NCBI GenBank assembly: GCA_028826165.1
Contig: JAPDFW010000087.1
Coordinates: 248,001 to 312,000 of the forward strand
Direction: 5' to 3'
Origin: Anaeramoeba ignava BMAN
Lineage: Eukaryota > Protista > Anaeramoebae
DNA: 64,000 bases
Position 1 is the first letter of the stretch; each line of letters begins with the position of its first letter. The notes beneath the pieces are model-generated. The model saw only the letters and a list, made by a program, of their open reading frames with translations. It was not told where the DNA came from and ran no database searches. Made by a program: the position numbers and the translations under genes. Shown in pieces: positions 1,253-64,000 of the stretch.

Positions 1253-4200
1253 ATGGATTCAATTAAAATAAATGACACACTTCAAGATCCACAAGAAACC
1301 AACGAGATTGTGAAAATCTATGAACATCCACGTAATACATATGAGATGTTTGTTAATTCTTTCTTTCAAAAAAATTACAAATCAGGAACAAAAGAACATA
1401 TTTTTACACAAGCACAAGAAATGTGGCGAAAGAAGAAAAAAGACAGTAAATTCATTGAGGAATACATGACAGAAGAAATCCGTAAGCACGAACTTGAGCA
1501 AAAATCAAATGAATTTGAAGAAAAAAAAAGGATCAAAAAAAAAAACAAAATGAAGATCAAAAAAGAATTTGTCACTCAACTTTTTCTCAGATTTGTTCCT
1601 GAAACAAAGATAACCCCCGAAATGATCAAGAATCGGAAAGTTGCCAAATCTCTGGAATCATTTGCTACGCACTGGTCTGATTTCGAATCTCTTCTTTTTA
1701 GTTATAGAGAGGGTCTTAAACGTGAACCTCAAAAGGAAACTGTTTTGTCAAAAAGTATCTCAGCCGTTAAAGAAAAAGAGATTGATATTCAACACTCAAT
1801 CCAACAGATTTGTTTCTATTTTGAGGGGAAATCAAAAAAGAAAAATCGAAAACAGAAAAAGAAATTTTTTCAGGATTTTATTTCTTCAATGCAAAAATTT
1901 TCAACTATTGTTTTGAATGCAAAGAAAAGACTTCGTAAAAGAATTTATCGTCAAAAATTGTGTGAAAAAAAACAGAAACAAAAAGTTGAAGATCATAATA
2001 ACACAAAGGATATTCCAATTATCCAAGAAAATCAAAATCAAAATCAAATTCAAAATCAAAATCAAAATCAAAATCAAAATGAAAATCAAAATCAAAATCA
2101 AAATCAAAATCAAAATCTCAAAATCAAAATCAAAATCAAAATAAAAATCAAAATCAAAATCAAAATCAAAATCAAAATCAAAATCAAAATCAAAATCAAA
2201 ATCAAAATCAAATTCAAATTCAAAATCAAAATCAAAATTTAAATCAAAATCAAAATCAAAATCAAAATATAAATGAAAATTTAAATGAAAATTTTAATGA
2301 AGATTTAAATGAAAATTTTAATGAAAATTTAAATGAAGATTTTAATGAAGATTTTAATGAAGATATTTCAAACAAATTTATAAATCAATTCCAAAACCAA
2401 ATACAAGATCAAAATGGAATAATCGAAATTCAAAATAAAATTCAATTTAACCAAAATATAAACCAATTCAATCAAAATCAATTCAATCAAAATCAATTTA
2501 ATCAATTTAATCAGTTTAATCAATTTAATCAATTTAATCAAATCAAAATAATTCACAACCAAATTCAAATTCAAAATCAAAATATAAATCAAAATATAAA
2601 TCAATTTGAAAATATAAATATAAATCAAAATATAAATCAATTTAATCAAAATCAAATAATTCACAACCAAATTCAAATTCAAAATCAAAATATAAATCAA
2701 AATATAAATCAATTTGAAAATATAAATATAAATCAAAATATAAATCAAAATCAAAATATAAATCAAAATCAAAATATAAATCAAAATCAAAATCAAAATA
2801 TAAATCAAAATCAATTTGAAAATATAAATCAAAATCAAAATATAAATCAAAATCAAAATCAAAATCAAAATATAAATCAATTTGAAAATATAAATCAAAA
2901 TCAAAATATAAATCAATTTGAAAATATAAATCAAAATCAAAATCAATTTGAAAATATAAATCAATTTATAAATTTAAATACAGAAAATTTTCTTCAGAAT
3001 ATATTCAATCACAACTTAAAATATAAAAAAGGCAACCAATATCTCAACAATAAAAATTATTTGGAAAATTGGGATAAATGTGAAATTGTTGGATTTAATA
3101 CATTTTCTTGGGATATTGTTGAAGAAAACTTAATCAATTTAATTAACATAGGAAGAGAACTTTTTCCTTTACCTTTATTTTCATTTTTCAGTTTTGTTCA
3201 AGAAATTCAATTATTTTCACTCATTCCAATTTCATATTTTATCAACAGATTTCAAATTCCAGAAGAATTAATTGATCTTTTTGAATTTCAAGTACTCAAA
3301 ATTTGTCCAATTTTTTCTGTTAGAACTAAACAAAATCGATCTTATTTTCTCAACATTTATAAAGTTGATGAAACACCACTTTTTAATCAAAAAAACATTC
3401 AAAATTTGATCTCAAATTCCAATGTTTATATAGAACCAAAAATTTTTGAAAATTCAAATGAAAAAAATATTGCAATTAAAAATTCAAATAAACACGATTA
3501 CTCAAAAAAATTCCGTCATTTCGCTTTACAAACAATCATCCAAAAATCCATATCTTCATTTTCAAATTTACAATCAATTCATAATTTAGATTTTCTTATA
3601 AATTCACTGGAAATCCCAAATGCACAGATGAACAAAAATGAATTTATTGAAAAGGAAATCATTCAACAACAATTAGAAACAATAGAAGAATCAAAAGATA
3701 TTGAAACAAACAAAGAGGATTTCTATGCAGATTCACAAATCCAAAATCTTCTCGAATTTTCTCAACTGCATAACAATGATTGCATTTTAATTACTTATGG
3801 AAATGTTTTTTCTGTTTCAGTAATTGATTCTAAAAATGACAAAAATTCAAAAAAATCCCATCTTTTTGTGGATCAGCACATTCCTGATTTAGATATTAAT
3901 TATTCTCAATTAGAACATTCAAAATTCCTTTTGTTCATGGAACTTCCTCTTGAGAATTCTTCATTTAATCAAGATCAAAATCAAAATCAAAATCAAATTC
4001 AAAATCAAAATCAAAATTATTATTCTTATCCTTTATATCTTGCTCCTTGCAATATAAATATTTCTCCTCAAACAATAGCAACCAGAATCAATAGTCTCAA
4101 AAAAATCATTTTAAAATCTCAAAAACCTATTGTCAATCTTATTGTTGAATCTGGTGATCCAGAATCGGACCCACATTCTCTTCTTACTTTGTTTTATTTT

Positions 4201-4956
4201 GGTCGTCTTTGGAAACAACTTGATCTTGAATTTCTAAACATAATGTCCTATTTCCAAAAAAATCGACCAGATAATTATCAAAATCAACCAAATCATCACA
4301 ATTTCAAAGATCTTCGTTTAAAATCAAAACTTTTAGAACTTTTTGGTTCTGATCTTTCCTTTCTTTTCAATCAAAAAAATCAAGAAAATTCTGGAAAAAC
4401 AACAAACAACTCTTTTCAAAATAAAGAAAATATAAAAAAGGAAATTTTGGATAATCAACGGCTTTACCACGTGGAGTTTTTTTCAAAAGAGGAACAAACA
4501 AAAAAAGAAATGGCAAATAATATTCCCAGTGAATATGATTTGGTTAAGATGTTTTTGACATTGGGATCTGATGAGATCCATGCTGTTCCTCGATTCGAAC
4601 AGATTCAACAAGAATTTCTATTTTATTTTCAACATATTCATATGAATGAAAGATTTCTTTCGTTTGGAAAATGTAACAATTTTAGTTGTCCTCATTGTGA
4701 AAAAAATGGAGTCAATTCTCAAGCAGGAAAATTTCTTTTGGATCATTTTCATGTTTTAATTCCTTCTTCTTCACAAAATCAATTCCCTCAAACTTATGAT
4801 TCTTTTCAGGAAAAATTAAAACAAAAAGATGAAATTATTCGCTCAAATAATTATTCAACTTGCAAATATTCAAATTGCTTTTATTATTCTTTAAAGGAAG
4901 ATGTTATGCAAAAACATGAAGAATTATTTCATATAAAAAATAAATTTATCAATTAA
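1253..4956 (+). CDS. Large protein derived from an inactive DDE (ISAzo13/IS630-like) transposase, with HMG-like N-terminus and C2H2 C-terminus; split by frameshift(s) in the CAAAAT repeat; paralogue of 37974-41909
   Basis: ORF 1253-2242 and ORF 3061-4956 align with the N- and C-terminal halves of the single ORF 37974-41909. Shared blocks: PRNxYExFxN, KKRLRKRIYRQ, FPLxxxxxS..EI...LIP..YxxxRxQI, KPIVxLIVxSGxPExDPxSLL..xYxGRxWxxLxL, FLSFxKC..CxxC, terminal C..C..Y......HE.xFH. The gap between them is NQ-coding microsatellite with no good GT-AG pair. Confidence 0.7.
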
Positions 4957-37973: not shown

Positions 37974-40900
37974 ATGACAGAACAAAAGGATCTTATTTAC
38001 AAATCACCAAGAAATATTTATGAAAAATATATCAACATTTATTTTATAAAACATATTCATCAAGGTGAAAAATTTTATATTTTTGGAAAGGCTCAAAAAA
38101 GTTGGAATAAACACAAAAATAATAAGAAATTTGTTGAAAATTTTATTCGAAAAAATTCCTCAAAATTTCTAAATGAAAAACTAAATGAAAAACTAAATGA
38201 AAAATCAAATGAAAAATCAAATGAAAAATCAAATGAAAAATTAAATGAAAATTTAAATGAAAATTTAAATGAAAATTCAAATGAAAAATTAAATGAAAAT
38301 TCAAATGAAAAATCAAATGAAAATTTAAATGAAAAATCAAATGAAAATCTAAATGAAAATTTAAAATTTTCTCATTTACCCAAATTCAATTCAATCCAAA
38401 TTCAAAAAAAACAAATCCAATGCCAACAACAACAAAATCATCTTCCTCAATTTATTTCCGAGTTTCTTCCAGGATTTGATTTTGAGAATATGCTAAAATC
38501 ACGTAAAAAGGATTTTTATGTTCTTCAAAATGTTGCTAAACAATGGTGTACTTATATTCAATTAAAAAATGAATATTCAAACAATTTAATTCGAACAGCA
38601 AGACATCGTTCAATACTTGCCCAAAGTATTAAACAAGTCGAAGAAAAAGCAAGTGATCTGAAAGTAAAATTATATGGAAGTCGGCATTTATTTTCTTCAT
38701 CTCCAATTAAAGATGAATTTAGTCAAGAAAACGAACAAAATCAAATTAATGAACAAAATCAAATTGATCAAATTAATAAAGAAAATCAAATTAATCAAAT
38801 TAATGAACAAAGTCAAATTAATCAAATTAATCAAATTAATGAAGAAAATCAAATCAATGAAGAAAATCAAGAAAATAATTTAAATGAGGATCAAATTAAT
38901 GAAGAAAATCATTCAAATGAAAATATAAAATGTACATGTAAATTCTGCATTACAAAATTCCTTAATAATATCTTTACAGAATTTAATGATTTCGTATCAT
39001 TGATTCTGACTTCTAAAAAAAGACTCAGAAAAAGAATTTATAGACAAAGAGCACTAGCAAAAAAACATGCGAAAAGAAAAGAGTTACAAGAAAAAGAACA
39101 AAACTCAACCAAGAAAACAAAGACCCAAAAATCACCCAAAATGAAACTAGAAGAAAAACAAGAAAAAAATGAAGAGGAGCATTCTGTTCAATCCGAATCA
39201 TGCAGTTTAGGATGTTGTCACAACAAACCAGAAAATAGACAGACAAAAAATGCACAAATGCAAAACAGACAAAAACAAAAAGATGAATCTGTAAATGAAG
39301 AAAGCAACGAATCAACAAAATGTCGTTGTGGTTGTCGATGCGGTGATAATTTCCAACAACTTTCACATTTACAATCACTAATTCAAAATACGGCTCAAGC
39401 TCTCCAATCACAACAGATGTATTTTTTCCCACAATATCCAATAGCAAACCCTTCTTTTTATCAACCGTTTTTTAATTCTGTTCAAGATCCTGTTACTTTT
39501 CTTTGTTTCAATTTGTGTTATTGGGATGAAGTCGAATACCAATTAATCTCAAAAATGAATTCGGGAAAAGGAACGTTTCCTTTATCAATTGATTTACTAT
39601 CAAACCTAATCTGCGAAATAAAGGATGCTGACTTGATTCCACTTGATTATATTGCCCAGAGATATCAAATTTCTCAAGAGTTTTTAAGCAGCTTGGAATC
39701 ACAAATTGCTCTAAATTTCCCAGTTATTTTGGTTAAGAAAAATAACAAATCGTTGTTTGTCAATATCCATAAAATTATGCAAGGAAATGTTTTGATTGAT
39801 TTGATTAATTTTTGCAATATTTCTTTATCTTCAGAAATTTATCAAGATATCCAAAATCATCTTGAACAAAAATTCCACCAAAAAATCCAAAAACAAGCAT
39901 TTCAAAATGGAAATTATTTGCCAGCTCAAAATTCACATCAATGCAGTCATGCAATGGATTATGAACTAAGATATTTTCTTCAAACAGAAATAATCCAAAG
40001 ACCTTCTTTTCTTTCAAAATTGCCGCCAAATGTGGGGAATTTACTTCAAAATATCAATAATCATTCAAAAAACATGATTCAAAGTGAAAAAAAATCTGAT
40101 TCTTTGGAAGCATATTCTCCTCTCACTTCAATTACTGTGCAAAACTCATTACCCAATCAGTCTATTGCTGTGAAATTAAAGCATCCTGATTTTTTTTATT
40201 GTCATACTTTGGTTCAATATTTGTCTGAAATGAGTTCTCTTTATCCCGAAGAATGTGCAATGATTTCTTTTGGAAATTTGAATACAATTCATGTTGATGG
40301 ATTATCTCCTTTAGGATCAAATTTACGAATTATAGATTTCTTTGAGAATCAAACAAATCCATTTTTCCAAATGCCAACAAGAAACCCTATTTATGAACAA
40401 TCAATGAAATTTGGAAATGCAAATGAATGGATAGAAGGGAATTATTATAATGGAGTAAATAAGGAGAATTATGAGGAGAATTATGGAGAAGTTTCATTGA
40501 ATCAAAATCATTTAAATCAAAATCAATTAAATCAAAATCATTTAAATCAAAATCAATTAAATCAAAATCAATTAAATCAAAATCATTTAAATCAAAATCA
40601 TTTAAATCAAAATCATTTAAATCAAAATCATTTAAATCAAAATCATTTAAATCAAAATCATTTAAATCAAAATCAATTAAATCAACATTTAAATCAAAAT
40701 CAATTAAATCAAAATCAATTGAATCAAAATCAATTAAATCAAAATCAATTAAATCAAAATCAATTAAATCAAAATCATTTGAATCAAAAACAAAAATCCC
40801 CAAATTTTACTCTCACATCAACAGGATACATGCTTCTCAAAAAAACAAATCCTCAACAATTCTACTTTGATGCTTTGGGAAGAAAACATTTACAAACTCC

Positions 40901-41909
40901 AAAATCAATATCAAACACAGTAATTTCAAGAGCAACAAAAAATAAATCACCAACTGCAGAATCATTTGCAAACGATTTATTCGAAATTCTCCAAAATAAC
41001 AACAAACCAATTGTTTCGCTAATTGTGGATAGCGGAAATCCTGAAACAGATCCTGCTTCATTGCTCGCGACAATATATTACGGAAGAATTTGGAGAGATC
41101 TTAATCTTGATATGCTAAATGTTGCTTGTCACACCCCAGACTCAAATAAATACAACTACATCAATGATTTAAGGAAAAATTTCGAAAATCAAATCCATCA
41201 ATTAAAATATCAAACATTTTTTGCAAACCAAAAACTATCTGAATTTTTCCATCAACAAGACCCTTCTCAAAAAAACTTTGATTTGCAAGAAAAAAACATT
41301 TCAGACCAATTATTAAATAAAATTGATGAATTTTGGAAAAATCAAAAATTCAATAACGAAAAAATCAACACAAAAATCAACGAAACAATCAGTGAAAAAA
41401 TTAATCAAGGATTTTATCATGATTATAAATTGATTCAAAGATTCCTATCAGCACCGCTTAGTGTGATTCAAAACGATCCAACTCTTTTAAATCTTCATAA
41501 AGAAATTGCATTTTTATTAAAACATGTTGATCGCAAGTTCCATTTCCTTTCATTTACAAAATGTTTCAGAAATAAATGCGAATTTTGTCAACAAAATGAA
41601 TTCCGTTCAAAAAATATTTCTTCTCTCTTAGAAAAGAATGATTTCCGAGTTTTTTTACCTATAACTTCAGGAAATCATCCTGGTCATTATTGCACCTTTT
41701 TGGAAGCAGCAGAAAAAAAAACTCATCAAGTCACTGATTTTTGTCTTCCTTCACTTTCTCAAAAAGAATACGTTCAACATTTCTTTTGTAGAGCTTTACA
41801 AAGATGTAGATATTTTTCTTTAAATCAAGATGATTTGGAAAGACATGAAAAAGTTTTTCATAAGCCTAATCCTCATAATAAAGATGCTCCTTTCGTTTGT
41901 TGTATGTGA
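37974..41909 (+). CDS. 1311-aa protein derived from an inactive ISAzo13/IS630-like DDE transposase, with HMG-like N-terminus, Cys-rich inserts and C-terminal C2H2 finger; paralogue of 1253-4956
   Basis: Intact intronless ORF. HPDFFY...AMISFGNLNTIHVDG resembles ISAzo13 HPDRDAQF...PVISVDTKKKELVG. LIVDSG resembles LITADGG. VACHTPDSNKYNYIND resembles VCHFPPGTSKWNKIEH. The C-terminus is CRALQRCRYFSLNQDDLERHEKVFH. Confidence 0.75.
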   Translation: MTEQKDLIYKSPRNIYEKYINIYFIKHIHQGEKFYIFGKAQKSWNKHKNNKKFVENFIRKNSSKFLNEKLNEKLNEKSNEKSNEKSNEKLNENLNENLNENSNEKLNENSNEKSNENLNEKSNENLNENLKFSHLPKFNSIQIQKKQIQCQQQQNHLPQFISEFLPGFDFENMLKSRKKDFYVLQNVAKQWCTYIQLKNEYSNNLIRTARHRSILAQSIKQVEEKASDLKVKLYGSRHLFSSSPIKDEFSQENEQNQINEQNQIDQINKENQINQINEQSQINQINQINEENQINEENQENNLNEDQINEENHSNENIKCTCKFCITKFLNNIFTEFNDFVSLILTSKKRLRKRIYRQRALAKKHAKRKELQEKEQNSTKKTKTQKSPKMKLEEKQEKNEEEHSVQSESCSLGCCHNKPENRQTKNAQMQNRQKQKDESVNEESNESTKCRCGCRCGDNFQQLSHLQSLIQNTAQALQSQQMYFFPQYPIANPSFYQPFFNSVQDPVTFLCFNLCYWDEVEYQLISKMNSGKGTFPLSIDLLSNLICEIKDADLIPLDYIAQRYQISQEFLSSLESQIALNFPVILVKKNNKSLFVNIHKIMQGNVLIDLINFCNISLSSEIYQDIQNHLEQKFHQKIQKQAFQNGNYLPAQNSHQCSHAMDYELRYFLQTEIIQRPSFLSKLPPNVGNLLQNINNHSKNMIQSEKKSDSLEAYSPLTSITVQNSLPNQSIAVKLKHPDFFYCHTLVQYLSEMSSLYPEECAMISFGNLNTIHVDGLSPLGSNLRIIDFFENQTNPFFQMPTRNPIYEQSMKFGNANEWIEGNYYNGVNKENYEENYGEVSLNQNHLNQNQLNQNHLNQNQLNQNQLNQNHLNQNHLNQNHLNQNHLNQNHLNQNHLNQNQLNQHLNQNQLNQNQLNQNQLNQNQLNQNQLNQNHLNQKQKSPNFTLTSTGYMLLKKTNPQQFYFDALGRKHLQTPKSISNTVISRATKNKSPTAESFANDLFEILQNNNKPIVSLIVDSGNPETDPASLLATIYYGRIWRDLNLDMLNVACHTPDSNKYNYINDLRKNFENQIHQLKYQTFFANQKLSEFFHQQDPSQKNFDLQEKNISDQLLNKIDEFWKNQKFNNEKINTKINETISEKINQGFYHDYKLIQRFLSAPLSVIQNDPTLLNLHKEIAFLLKHVDRKFHFLSFTKCFRNKCEFCQQNEFRSKNISSLLEKNDFRVFLPITSGNHPGHYCTFLEAAEKKTHQVTDFCLPSLSQKEYVQHFFCRALQRCRYFSLNQDDLERHEKVFHKPNPHNKDAPFVCCM

Positions 41910-59891: not shown

Positions 59892-62800
59892 AATAATTTA
59901 ATCAAAATATTTAATAATAATTAATTAATATTTAATTTGGAAATTAATATAAAATTATAAATATAAATAAAATATAAATAAATAATAAATTAATTATTAA
60001 TTAAATAATGAAATAAAATTAATTAAAATATTTAATTAATAATTTAATCAAAATATTTAATAATAATTAATTAATATTTAATTTGGAAATTAATATAAAA
60101 TTATAAATATAAATAAAATATAAATAAATAATAAATTAAATTATTAATTAAATAATGAAATAAAATTAATTAAAATATTTAATTAATAATTTAATCAAAA
60201 TATTTAATAATAATTAATTAATATTTAATTTAGAAATTAATATAAAATTATAAATATAAATAAAATATAAATAAATAATAAATTAAATATTAATTAAATA
60301 ATGAAATAAAATTAATTCAAAATATTTAATTAATAATTTAATCAAAATATTTAATAATAATTAATTAATATTTAATTTGGAAATTAATATAAAATTATAA
60401 ATAAAATAAAATATAAATAAATAATAAATTAAATATTAATTAAATAATGAAATAAAATTAATTAAAATATTTAATTAATAATTTAATCAAAATATTTAAT
60501 AATAATTAATTAATATTTAATTTAGAAATTAATATAAAATTATAAATATAAATAAAATATAAATAAATAATAAATTAAATATTAATTAAATAATGAAATA
60601 AAATTAATCAAAATATTTAATTAATAATTTAATCAAAATATTTAATAATAATTAATTAATATTTAATTTAGAAATTAATATAAAATTATAAATATAAATA
60701 AAATATAAATAAATAATAAATCAATTATTAATTAAATAATGAAATAAAATTAATTAAAATATTTAATTAATAATTTAATCAAAATATTTAATAATAATTA
60801 ATTAATATTTAATTTGAAATTAATATAAAATTATAAATATAAATAAAATATAAATAAATAATAAATTAAATATTAATTAAATAATGAAATAAAATTAATT
60901 AAAATATTTAATTAATAATTTAATCAAAATATTTAAATAATAATTAATTAATATTTAATTTAGAAATTAATATAAAATTATAATTATAAATAAAATATAA
61001 ATAAATAATAAATTAATTATTAATTAAATAATGAAATAAAATTAATCAAAATATTTAATTAATAATTTAATCAAAATATTTAATAATAATTAATTAATAT
61101 TTAATTTAGAAATTAATATAAAATTATAAATATAAATAAAATATAAATACAAATAAATTAAACATTAATTAAATAATGAAATAAAATTAATCAAAATATT
61201 TAATTAATAATTTAATCAAAATATTTAATAATAATTAATTAATATTTAATTTAGAAATTAATATAAAATTATAATTATAAATAAAATATAAATAAATAAT
61301 AAATTAAATATTAATTAAATAAAGAAATAAAATTAATTAAAATATTTAATTAATAATTTAATCAAAATATTTAAATAATAATTAATTAATATTTAATTTG
61401 GAAATTAATATAAAATTATAAATATAAATAAAATATAAATAAATAATAAATTAAATATTAATTAAATAATGAAATAAAAATTAATTAAAATATTTAATTA
61501 ATAATTTAATCAAAATATTTAATAATAATTAATTAATATTTAATTTAGAAATTAATATAAAATTATAATTATAAATAAAATATAAATAAATAATAAATTA
61601 AATATTAATTAAATAATGAAATAAAATTAATTAAAATATTTAATTAATAATTTAATCAAAATATTTAATAATAATTAATTAATATTTAATTTAGAAATTA
61701 ATATAAAATTATAAATATAAATAAAATATAAATAAATAATAAATTAAATTATTAATTAAATAATGAAATAAAATTGATCAAAATATTTAATTAATAATTT
61801 AATCAAAATATTTAATAATAATTAATTTATATTTAATTTAGAAATTAATATAAAATTATAAATATAAATAAAATATAAATAAATAATAAATTAATTATTA
61901 ATTAAATAATGAAATAAAATTAATTAAAATATTTAATTAATAATTTAATCAAAATATTTAATAATAATTAATTTAATATTTAATTTAAAATTAATATAAA
62001 ATTATAAATATAAATAAAATATAAATACAAATAAATTAAATATTAATTAAATAATGAAATAAAATTAATTAAAATATTTAATTAATAATTTAATCAAAAT
62101 ATTTAATAATAATTAATTAATATTTAATTTGGAAATTAATATAAAATTATAAATATAAATAAAATTATAAATAAATAATAAATTAATTATTAATTAAATA
62201 ATGAAATAAAATTAATTAAAATATTTAATTAATAATTTAATCAAAATATTTAATAATAATTAATTAATATTTAATTTAGAAATTAATATAAAATTATAAT
62301 TATAAATAAAATATAAATAAATAATAAATTAATTATTAATTAAATAATGAAATAAAATTAATTAAAATATTTAATTAATAATTTAATCAAAATATTTAAT
62401 AATAATTAATTAATATTTAATTTGGAAATTAATATAAAATTATAAATATAAAATAAATTATAAATAAATAATAAATTAATTATTAATTAAATAATGAAAT
62501 AAAATTGATCAAAATATTTAATTAATAATTTAATCAAAATATTTAATAATAATTAATTAATATTTAATTTAAAAATTAATATAAAATTATAAATATAAAT
62601 AAAATATAAATAAATAATAAATTAATTATTAATTAAATAATGAAATAAAATTAATCAAAATATTTAATTAATAATTTAATCAAAATATTTAATAATAATT
62701 AATTAATATTTAATTTAGAAATTAATATAAAATTATAAATAAAAATAAATTATAAATAAATAATAAATCAAATATTAATTAAATAATGAAATAAAATTAA

Positions 62801-64000
62801 TTAAAATATTTAATTAATAATTTAATCAAAATATTAAATAATAATTAATTAATATTTAATTTACAAATTAATATAAAATTATAAATATAAATAAAATATA
62901 AATAAATAATAAATTAAATATTAATTAAATAATGAAATAAAATTGATCAAAATATTTAATTAATAATTTAATCAAAAATATTAAATAATAATTAATTAAT
63001 ATTTAATTTGGAAATTAATATAAAATTATAAATAAAAATAAAATATAAATAAATAATAAATTAAATATTAATTAATTAATGAAATAAAATTAATTAAAAT
63101 ATTTAATTAATAATTTAATCAAAATATTTAATAATAATTAATTAATATTTAATTTGGAAATTAATATAAAATTATAAATATAAATAAAATATAAATAAAT
63201 AATAAATTAATTATTAATTAAATAATGAAATAAAATTGATTAAAATATTTAATTAATAATTTAATCAAAAATATTTAATAATAATTAATTAATATTTAAT
63301 TTAGAAATTAATATAAAATTATAATTATAAATAAAATATAAATAAATAATAAATTAAATATTAATTAAATAAAGAAATAAAATTAATTAAAATATTTAAT
63401 TAATAATTTAATCAAAATATTAAATAATAATTAATTAATATTTAATTTGGAAATTAATATAAAATTATAAATATAAATAAATTATAAATAAATAATAAAT
63501 TAAATATTAATTAAATAATGAAATAAAAATAATTAAAATATTTAATTAATAATTTAATCAAAATATTAAATAATAATTAATTAATATTTAATTTAGAAAT
63601 TAATATAAAATTATAATTATAAATAAAATATAAATAAATAATAAATTAAATATTAATTAAATAAAGAAATAAAATTAATTAAAATATTTAATTAATAATT
63701 TAATCAAAATATTAAATAATAATTAATTAATATTTAATTTAAAAATTAATATAAAATTATAAATATAAATAAAATATAAATAAATAATAAATTAATTATT
63801 AATTAAATAATGAAATAAAATTGATCAAAATATTTAATTAATAATTTAATCAAAATATTTAATAATAATTAATTAATATTTAATTTACAAATTAATATAA
63901 AATTATAAATATAAATAAAATATAAATAAATAATAAATTAATTATTAATTAAATAATGAAATAAAATTATTAAAATATTTAATTAATTATTTAATCAAAA
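59892..64000. repeat. Satellite array with a ~146-bp unit, ~28 copies, running off the window end
   Basis: The landmark C in AATTTAATCAAAATAT falls at 59903, 60049, 60196, 60343, 60488, 60634, 60780, 60925 (spacing 145-147). Units are near-identical and almost pure A/T. Confidence 0.95.

Follow-up and report, generated by a model that had tools for sequence, protein, structure and literature searches.

A probable host gene of Anaeramoeba ignava descended from an ISAzo13/Zator-type transposase

How does a protein with the layout of a transposase come to be kept in a genome where it can apparently no longer move anything, and what might it do there? The question is raised by a gene of the anaerobic amoeba Anaeramoeba ignava BMAN (Metamonada, Anaeramoebidae), located at positions 37974-41909 of the forward strand in a 64,000-nucleotide stretch of contig JAPDFW010000087.1 (the window, to which all coordinates refer unless a contig is named). 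An initial annotation, made from the sequence alone, had proposed a domesticated and catalytically dead transposase of ISAzo13/IS630 type. The gene's ancestor was a DDE cut-and-paste transposase of the ISAzo13/TP36-Zator type, as established by transitive profile homology and by fold. Its product is predicted to be catalytically inactive, and is quite probably a host protein with the role of a nuclear regulator that binds DNA or chromatin. The gene consists of a single uninterrupted open reading frame (ORF) of 1311 codons, running from ATG to TGA and encoding 1311 amino acids. At 26% G+C about 8.6% of random codons (roughly one in 12) are stops, so that an open frame of this length lies far beyond chance; the mean G+C of the whole window is about 20%. 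Both the intact, intronless ORF and the three ordered motif blocks described by the initial annotation were recovered at the places given.

Descent from a DDE transposase

The ancestry was established through the family of the protein. A profile built from eight A. ignava paralogues was searched exhaustively against protein collections, where it matches 879 proteins at E <=1e-3, of which 416 also pass E <=1e-10, with some E-values at 1e-60 and beyond. These include A. flamelloides proteins, a protein of Ptychodera flava and many metagenomic proteins. Core sequences of 134 proteins were aligned, 17 from Anaeramoeba among them; PF07592 (DDE_Tnp_ISAZ013) is matched by 34 and is the sole Pfam family to recur in this set. 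The best match, that of relative P0006, scores 31.1 bits against a cut-off of 26.9 over the segment between the second catalytic Asp (D2) and the catalytic Glu (E). Direct searches are silent: phmmer found no match to the protein among Protein Data Bank (PDB) sequences, and word-indexed protein searches with the C-terminal region, in its full-length context and alone, returned none. A pentapeptide match to HetL was rejected as an artefact of the NQNHL repeat.

In the literature bacterial ISAzo13/TP36 has the Zator superfamily as its eukaryotic counterpart, and the two are placed in or next to the IS630-Tc1-mariner group (PMC5718144, PMC7386202). Zator would be the eukaryotic name of the gene's lineage. 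Eukaryotic relatives with an intact DDE triad, which may be mobile, fit the description of Zator transposons. One of them, in Ptychodera flava (L048:4001-6312), sits within a spermine synthase gene that is encoded on the other strand, and the 2 kb to either side of it yielded no terminal repeats.

The predicted fold leads to the same group. Residues 726-1311 were folded by AlphaFold2 (AF2) with the family alignment, giving a predicted local distance difference test score (pLDDT) of 74.9 and a predicted template modelling score (pTM) of 0.73. In a structural search against PDB representatives, the catalytic domain of Mos1 ranks first (Z 8.6 over 165 residues), followed by Metnase (Z 8.3), retroviral and foamy-virus integrases (Z 7-8) and Sleeping Beauty (Z 6.8). 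IstA, TnsB, Hermes and PIWI domains also appear, and the first 30 rows are all RNase H-like. Because the individual Z values are middling, the RNase H-like assignment is carried by the uniform theme of these rows. A fold search of the model atlas returned eukaryotic clusters from rotifers and arthropods named 'C2H2-type domain-containing', together with bacterial clusters whose members all (100%) carry PF07592. Of the bacterial PF07592 models, the best aligns over 225 residues with a template modelling (TM) score of 0.76, normalised by the bacterial model, and a root-mean-square deviation of 3.0. The transposase origin put forward in the initial annotation thus withstands a check on the fold, in that an RNase H-like core is present in the AF2 model and matches models of both Tc1/mariner and ISAzo13 proteins, and the family profile reaches relatives that match PF07592 themselves.

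Catalytic triad and zinc ligands

The motif blocks of the core and their catalytic positions, all on the forward strand and read from the ORF translation, are as follows.

From 40182, +: HPDFFY motif
40272-40274, +: G767, within the motif ISFG
41028-41030, +: D1019, within the motif LIVDSGNPE
41163-41165, +: N1064, within the motif YNYIND, 45 residues past D1019

In the AF2 model the first strand carries G767, D1019 comes shortly after the fourth, and N1064 is part of the helix that follows the fifth; these are the canonical D, D and E places of an RNase H-like core. Triad residues were counted by alignment of the relatives to the family profile with hmmalign, the Anaeramoeba set comprising 17 proteins (eight from A. 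ignava and nine from A. flamelloides), and an independent MAFFT alignment agrees.

First Asp (D1): Asp in 48/49 non-Anaeramoeba relatives; 0/16 Anaeramoeba proteins; G767 in the 1311-residue protein
Second Asp (D2): Asp in 104/118 non-Anaeramoeba relatives; 9/17 Anaeramoeba proteins; D1019 in the 1311-residue protein
Glu (E): Glu in 131/134 non-Anaeramoeba relatives; 0/16 Anaeramoeba proteins (one has Asp); N1064 in the 1311-residue protein
Full DDE triad: 42/48 non-Anaeramoeba relatives; no Anaeramoeba protein; G / D / N in the 1311-residue protein

The non-Anaeramoeba relatives carry the three blocks in the forms SCDDKNKvnVG, DNGPDW and YAPGxSxxNPIEHxW. The initial annotation had read D1 as changed to Gly and E to Asn with D2 kept, a reading on which the two alignments concur. 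A zinc cluster that follows the core behaves differently: H1184, C1197, C1202 and C1205 are conserved in 16-17 of the 17 proteins from Anaeramoeba and, among the remaining relatives in the MAFFT alignment, in about 105-110. Since the zinc ligands are kept while D1 and E are replaced across the Anaeramoeba clade, the catalytic residues have been lost selectively. Judged from these substitutions, the nuclease of the protein is in all likelihood dead, and DNA would no longer be cut or joined.

Copies, selection and mobility

Is the gene a mobile element or a resident of the genome? Six-frame searches of the A. ignava assembly (42.8 Mb in 147 contigs) with two conserved halves of the protein found nine loci, with open frames of 648-1697 amino acids and 25-53% identity. 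None is a recent or near-identical copy: the nearest paralogue, on contig 35 (C35), is 53% identical at the protein level, and that in the C-terminal part. No DDE-intact family member was found in the A. ignava genome, and a query with an intact relative returns the same nine loci. Around the ORF no terminal inverted repeats were detected, as the initial annotation had noted; the only inverted matches are those of about 72% in A/T-rich, low-complexity DNA. The marks of an active element, namely near-identical copies with terminal inverted repeats and an intact D-D-E, were looked for and none was found.

At least nine family proteins occur in A. flamelloides. In a tree of the family the Anaeramoeba proteins are monophyletic, with a support of 100 in the Shimodaira-Hasegawa-like approximate likelihood ratio test (SH-aLRT), and the contig-35 paralogue is the sister of the gene (98). 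Orthologues were compared between A. flamelloides strains for two pairs, which have ratios of nonsynonymous to synonymous substitution (dN/dS) of 0.35 and 0.36 at dS 0.03-0.04, and the excess of synonymous changes is significant in both (binomial p 1.9e-4 and 1e-4). The gene itself is single-copy, has been kept open and is without terminal repeats, and its sister-species relatives are under purifying selection. The description of the gene as domesticated holds up on three counts: intact, diverged paralogues, a triad lost clade-wide, and a dN/dS of about 0.35 in the sister species.

Another family member lies in the same window, 36 kb upstream.

1253-4956, +: diverged paralogue, about 29% identical, in frames 1253-2242 and 3061-4956; triad positions G / E / H

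Its two frames are parted by about 820 bp of hexamer repeat (2242-3061), which may be an intron, a frameshift or an assembly error. The paralogue C86 occurs in a transcriptome-derived protein set. Nine family members (P0001, P0151, P0004, P0005, P0007, P0009, P0090, P0152 and P0153) bear NCBI product names unrelated to each other and to the fold, including a-type inclusion protein, cyp63, heat shock protein, JmjC demethylase, Nop52, pyk3 kinase and snm1. These names were probably transferred through low-complexity matches.

Domain layout, probable role and known parallels

What remains of the ancestral protein can be set out along the gene.

37974-41909, +: whole gene, intact ORF of 1311 codons by ORF check
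37995-38153, +: N-terminal conserved domain, residues ~8-60, PRNxYExFVN...AQKxW, common to all paralogues and two non-Anaeramoeba relatives
38170-38365, +: repeat array of 12 nt x 16 (NEK/LNE tract), in frame, from repeat analysis
38725-38883, +: repeat array of 9/27 nt (NQI tract), in frame, from repeat analysis
38931-39053, +: CxCxxC followed by the basic motif KKRLRKRIYRQR, residues 320-360, from paralogue comparison
39513-39806, +: winged-helix-like domain, residues ~514-611, from the model; also in DDE-intact relatives
40182-40463, +: RNase H-like core, first part, with G767 on strand β1, from alignments and model
40500-40789, +: repeat array of 15 nt x 19.5 (NQNHL tract), in frame, an insertion within the RNase H-like core, from repeat analysis and model
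40806-41303, +: RNase H-like core, second part, with D1019 after β4 and N1064 on a helix, from alignments and model
41523-41588, +: His-Cys3 zinc cluster, H1184, C1197, C1202 and C1205, nearly invariant family-wide
41787-41861, +: C-terminal C2H2-like finger, C1272, C1278, H1291 and H1296, from pattern and alignment

The invasion of the linkers by repeat tracts, noted at the outset, could be traced to the three arrays inside the ORF, all of which are in frame, every period being a multiple of 3. At the far end of the window, positions 60001-64000 are a very A/T-rich satellite with a G+C of only 2.6%.

The first 60 or so residues are conserved in all paralogues and present in two relatives outside Anaeramoeba, of which P0067, a sequence outside the profile-building set, matches the domain at E 1.7e-7. 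The initial annotation had called this region HMG-like. A conserved domain is indeed there; the likeness to an HMG box is weak. The domain has no match in Pfam, the HMG box PF00505 included, and of the 43 HMG boxes that a PF00505 search detects in the A. ignava genome none is a family N-terminus. The TFAM HMG box gives a weak match (E 0.32) over its full length, and hhalign against 20 A. ignava HMG boxes yields P 0.0029 at a probability of 10.6%; a language-model atlas search with the domain gave no useful match. Such results lend weak support to an HMG-box-like domain. The 43 genomic HMG-box matches (for example C60:1358708-1359890, C56:40140-40861 and C107:87780-88519) have a feature of their own: almost all stop at profile position 48 with the frame running into GT, which suggests a shared intron position, and many are paired, 400-1000 bp apart.

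The basic motif AKKRLRKR[IV]YRQR (39015-39053) is invariant in all eight A. ignava paralogues examined, which are otherwise 25-50% identical, and is present in A. flamelloides as well; it was not seen in the non-Anaeramoeba relatives. The basic stretch KKRLRKRIYRQR is likely to be a nuclear localisation signal or a nucleic-acid-binding helix. Downstream, residues 502-740 were modelled from an alignment of 20 sequences with a pLDDT of 84, exceeding 94 for most of the first 100 residues. The structural matches of residues ~514-611 are solely to winged-helix proteins (ribosomal S25e, Fur/PerR, TFIIIC, SelB, ORC and the MarR and ArsR families). As DDE-intact relatives carry it too, the modelled winged helix is probably an ancestral DNA-binding domain. 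The terminal finger is spaced C1272-x5-C1278-x12-H1291-x4-H1296, to be compared with the C2H2 pattern C-x2-4-C-x12-H-x3-5-H. It has no Pfam match in the 1311-residue protein; its columns are conserved in most relatives, one of which scores below the Pfam C2H2 cut-off. The CxxxxCxxC cluster and this finger had both been described as retained, and the MAFFT alignment finds both conserved.

A mechanism can be proposed on this basis. The ancestral layout has been kept, from the N-terminal helical domain through the winged helix, RNase H-like core and His-Cys3 cluster to the terminal C2H2-like finger. The basic motif would carry the protein into the nucleus, where the winged helix, the zinc modules and possibly the HMG-like domain would bind DNA, with the dead core serving as a scaffold or dimerisation surface. 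Located in the nucleus, bound to DNA and devoid of its former activity, the protein could act as a regulator or chromatin protein, as other transposase-derived families of transcription factors do.

Several observations weigh against this interpretation or limit its reach. Pfam and NCBIfam scans of the full protein and of eight pieces found nothing relevant, PF07592 being absent even at E <=10, and a six-frame search of the whole A. ignava genome with PF07592 gave no match. As the 1311-residue protein itself matches no Pfam family, its membership of ISAzo13 rests on transitive and structural evidence. Foldseek against the PDB returned nothing significant for either model, that of the core or that of the winged helix; the Z scores of the core are individually middling (best 8.6), and those of the winged helix are low (Z <=5.6, Foldseek E >=0.19). 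A dN/dS of 0.35 denotes no more than moderate constraint, and the value comes from other members of the family; for the gene against its contig-35 paralogue the value is about 0.3 at a saturated dS of 1.4. The deeper relations of the tree are unsupported, its branches are long, and no clear one-to-one orthologues link the two Anaeramoeba species. The exact 1311-residue product is absent from the protein collection.

Among the alternatives, the one that survives best keeps the host gene and changes its job. The captured transposase might keep related transposons in check, attach to repeats or centromeres as CENP-B does, bind RNA or be purely a protein scaffold. Ancestry, dead triad and constraint are accounted for equally well in this way, and the satellite at 60-64 kb of the window also counts in its favour. 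No intact transposon of the ISAzo13/Zator family is left in the genome to be repressed, however, and at least nine diverged paralogues per species resemble a diversified family of factors rather than one housekeeping binder, which makes a non-regulatory role rather unlikely. It is improbable that the copies are functionless relics, old inactive transposons that have simply not yet decayed. The missing catalytic residues, the repeat tracts inside coding sequence and the want of clear one-to-one orthologues are what decay might produce; yet nine copies keep frames of 648-1697 amino acids at 25-53% identity where about one codon in 12 would be a stop, every repeat tract is in frame, the dN/dS of 0.35 is significantly below 1, and the zinc ligands and basic motif are invariant where the catalytic residues vary. 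Still more improbable is an active transposase or recombinase with a non-canonical site, formed by D1019 and nearby acidic residues such as D775 or D1065. D2 is kept in nine of the 17 clade members and an Asp adjoins the former Glu position in the 1311-residue protein, but no substitute acidic residue is conserved among the paralogues, D1 and E are lost throughout the Anaeramoeba clade, and terminal repeats and recent copies are both wanting (the nearest is 53% identical). A chance likeness of motifs with no transposase ancestry, to which the missing direct Pfam match might be ascribed, is effectively refuted by profile E-values to 1e-60 and beyond with DDE-intact, PF07592-matching proteins and by a fold that matches ISAzo13 models and Mos1.

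A nuclear regulator built on a dead transposase is accordingly preferred, and a broader proposal can be attached to it more tentatively. Anaeramoebae may have turned one Zator-type transposase into regulators that bind DNA sequence-specifically, and these may have expanded into a lineage-specific family with nine or more genes in each species, a proposition to which we give somewhat less than even credence. If true, the Zator superfamily would for the first time be known to have given rise to a host gene family, and FAR1/FHY3 of plants would have a parallel in a protist. New DNA-binding proteins have repeatedly arisen from captured transposases. Most of the known examples are found in animals, plants and fungi, and only a handful of superfamilies is represented; the list would be extended to the ISAzo13/Zator lineage and to an anaerobic protist on a deep branch. 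The clade-wide pattern is a clean one, with catalytic residues lost and zinc ligands and basic motif retained. Misleading database names are corrected in the process, and a defined set of candidate regulators is obtained in a poorly studied lineage. Full-text searches of a limited library reported no host gene derived from Zator or ISAzo13, and the Anaeramoeba papers in the limited literature searched make no mention of transposases of this type. The family can be called undescribed, as initially claimed, within the limited literature and databases searched, and it is apparently the first domestication reported from the ISAzo13/Zator transposon group.

The protein can be compared with known systems. 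It shares with ISAzo13/TP36 (PF07592) the RNase H-like core and the order of blocks, DxKxK on β1, DxGxxx after β4 and (C/Y)xxPxxSxxNxIE. It differs in having no direct match to the hidden Markov model, in the loss of D1 and E, and in the presence of long repeat tracts and of additional modules at the N-terminus, in the winged helix and in the zinc-binding parts; the gene, moreover, is eukaryotic, single-copy and without terminal repeats. To Zator, known here through its pairing in the literature with ISAzo13/TP36, the link is a homologous transposase by transitive profile and fold. The A. ignava gene is nevertheless not a transposon, since its triad is dead and neither terminal repeats nor recent copies were found. 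SETMAR/Metnase and Mos1, both of Tc1/mariner type, provide the best solved-structure matches to the core (Z 8.3-8.6) at a sequence identity of just 6-11%. SETMAR is likewise a transposase captured as a host gene; it stems from a different superfamily, retains part of its catalytic activity and has a SET domain fused to it. Other parallels are proteins of unrelated source superfamilies. FHY3/FAR1, derived from MULE elements, are disabled transposases reused as DNA-binding host proteins and expanded to a multi-gene family (PMC13306707, PMC4231638). Like them and like the CENP-B/pogo-derived proteins, the A. ignava protein would be a catalytically disabled transposase that binds DNA for its host, a function that has been demonstrated in those systems and that we infer in this one. 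Captured dead transposases are a well-known kind; what is new here is the source superfamily and the lineage in which the capture took place.

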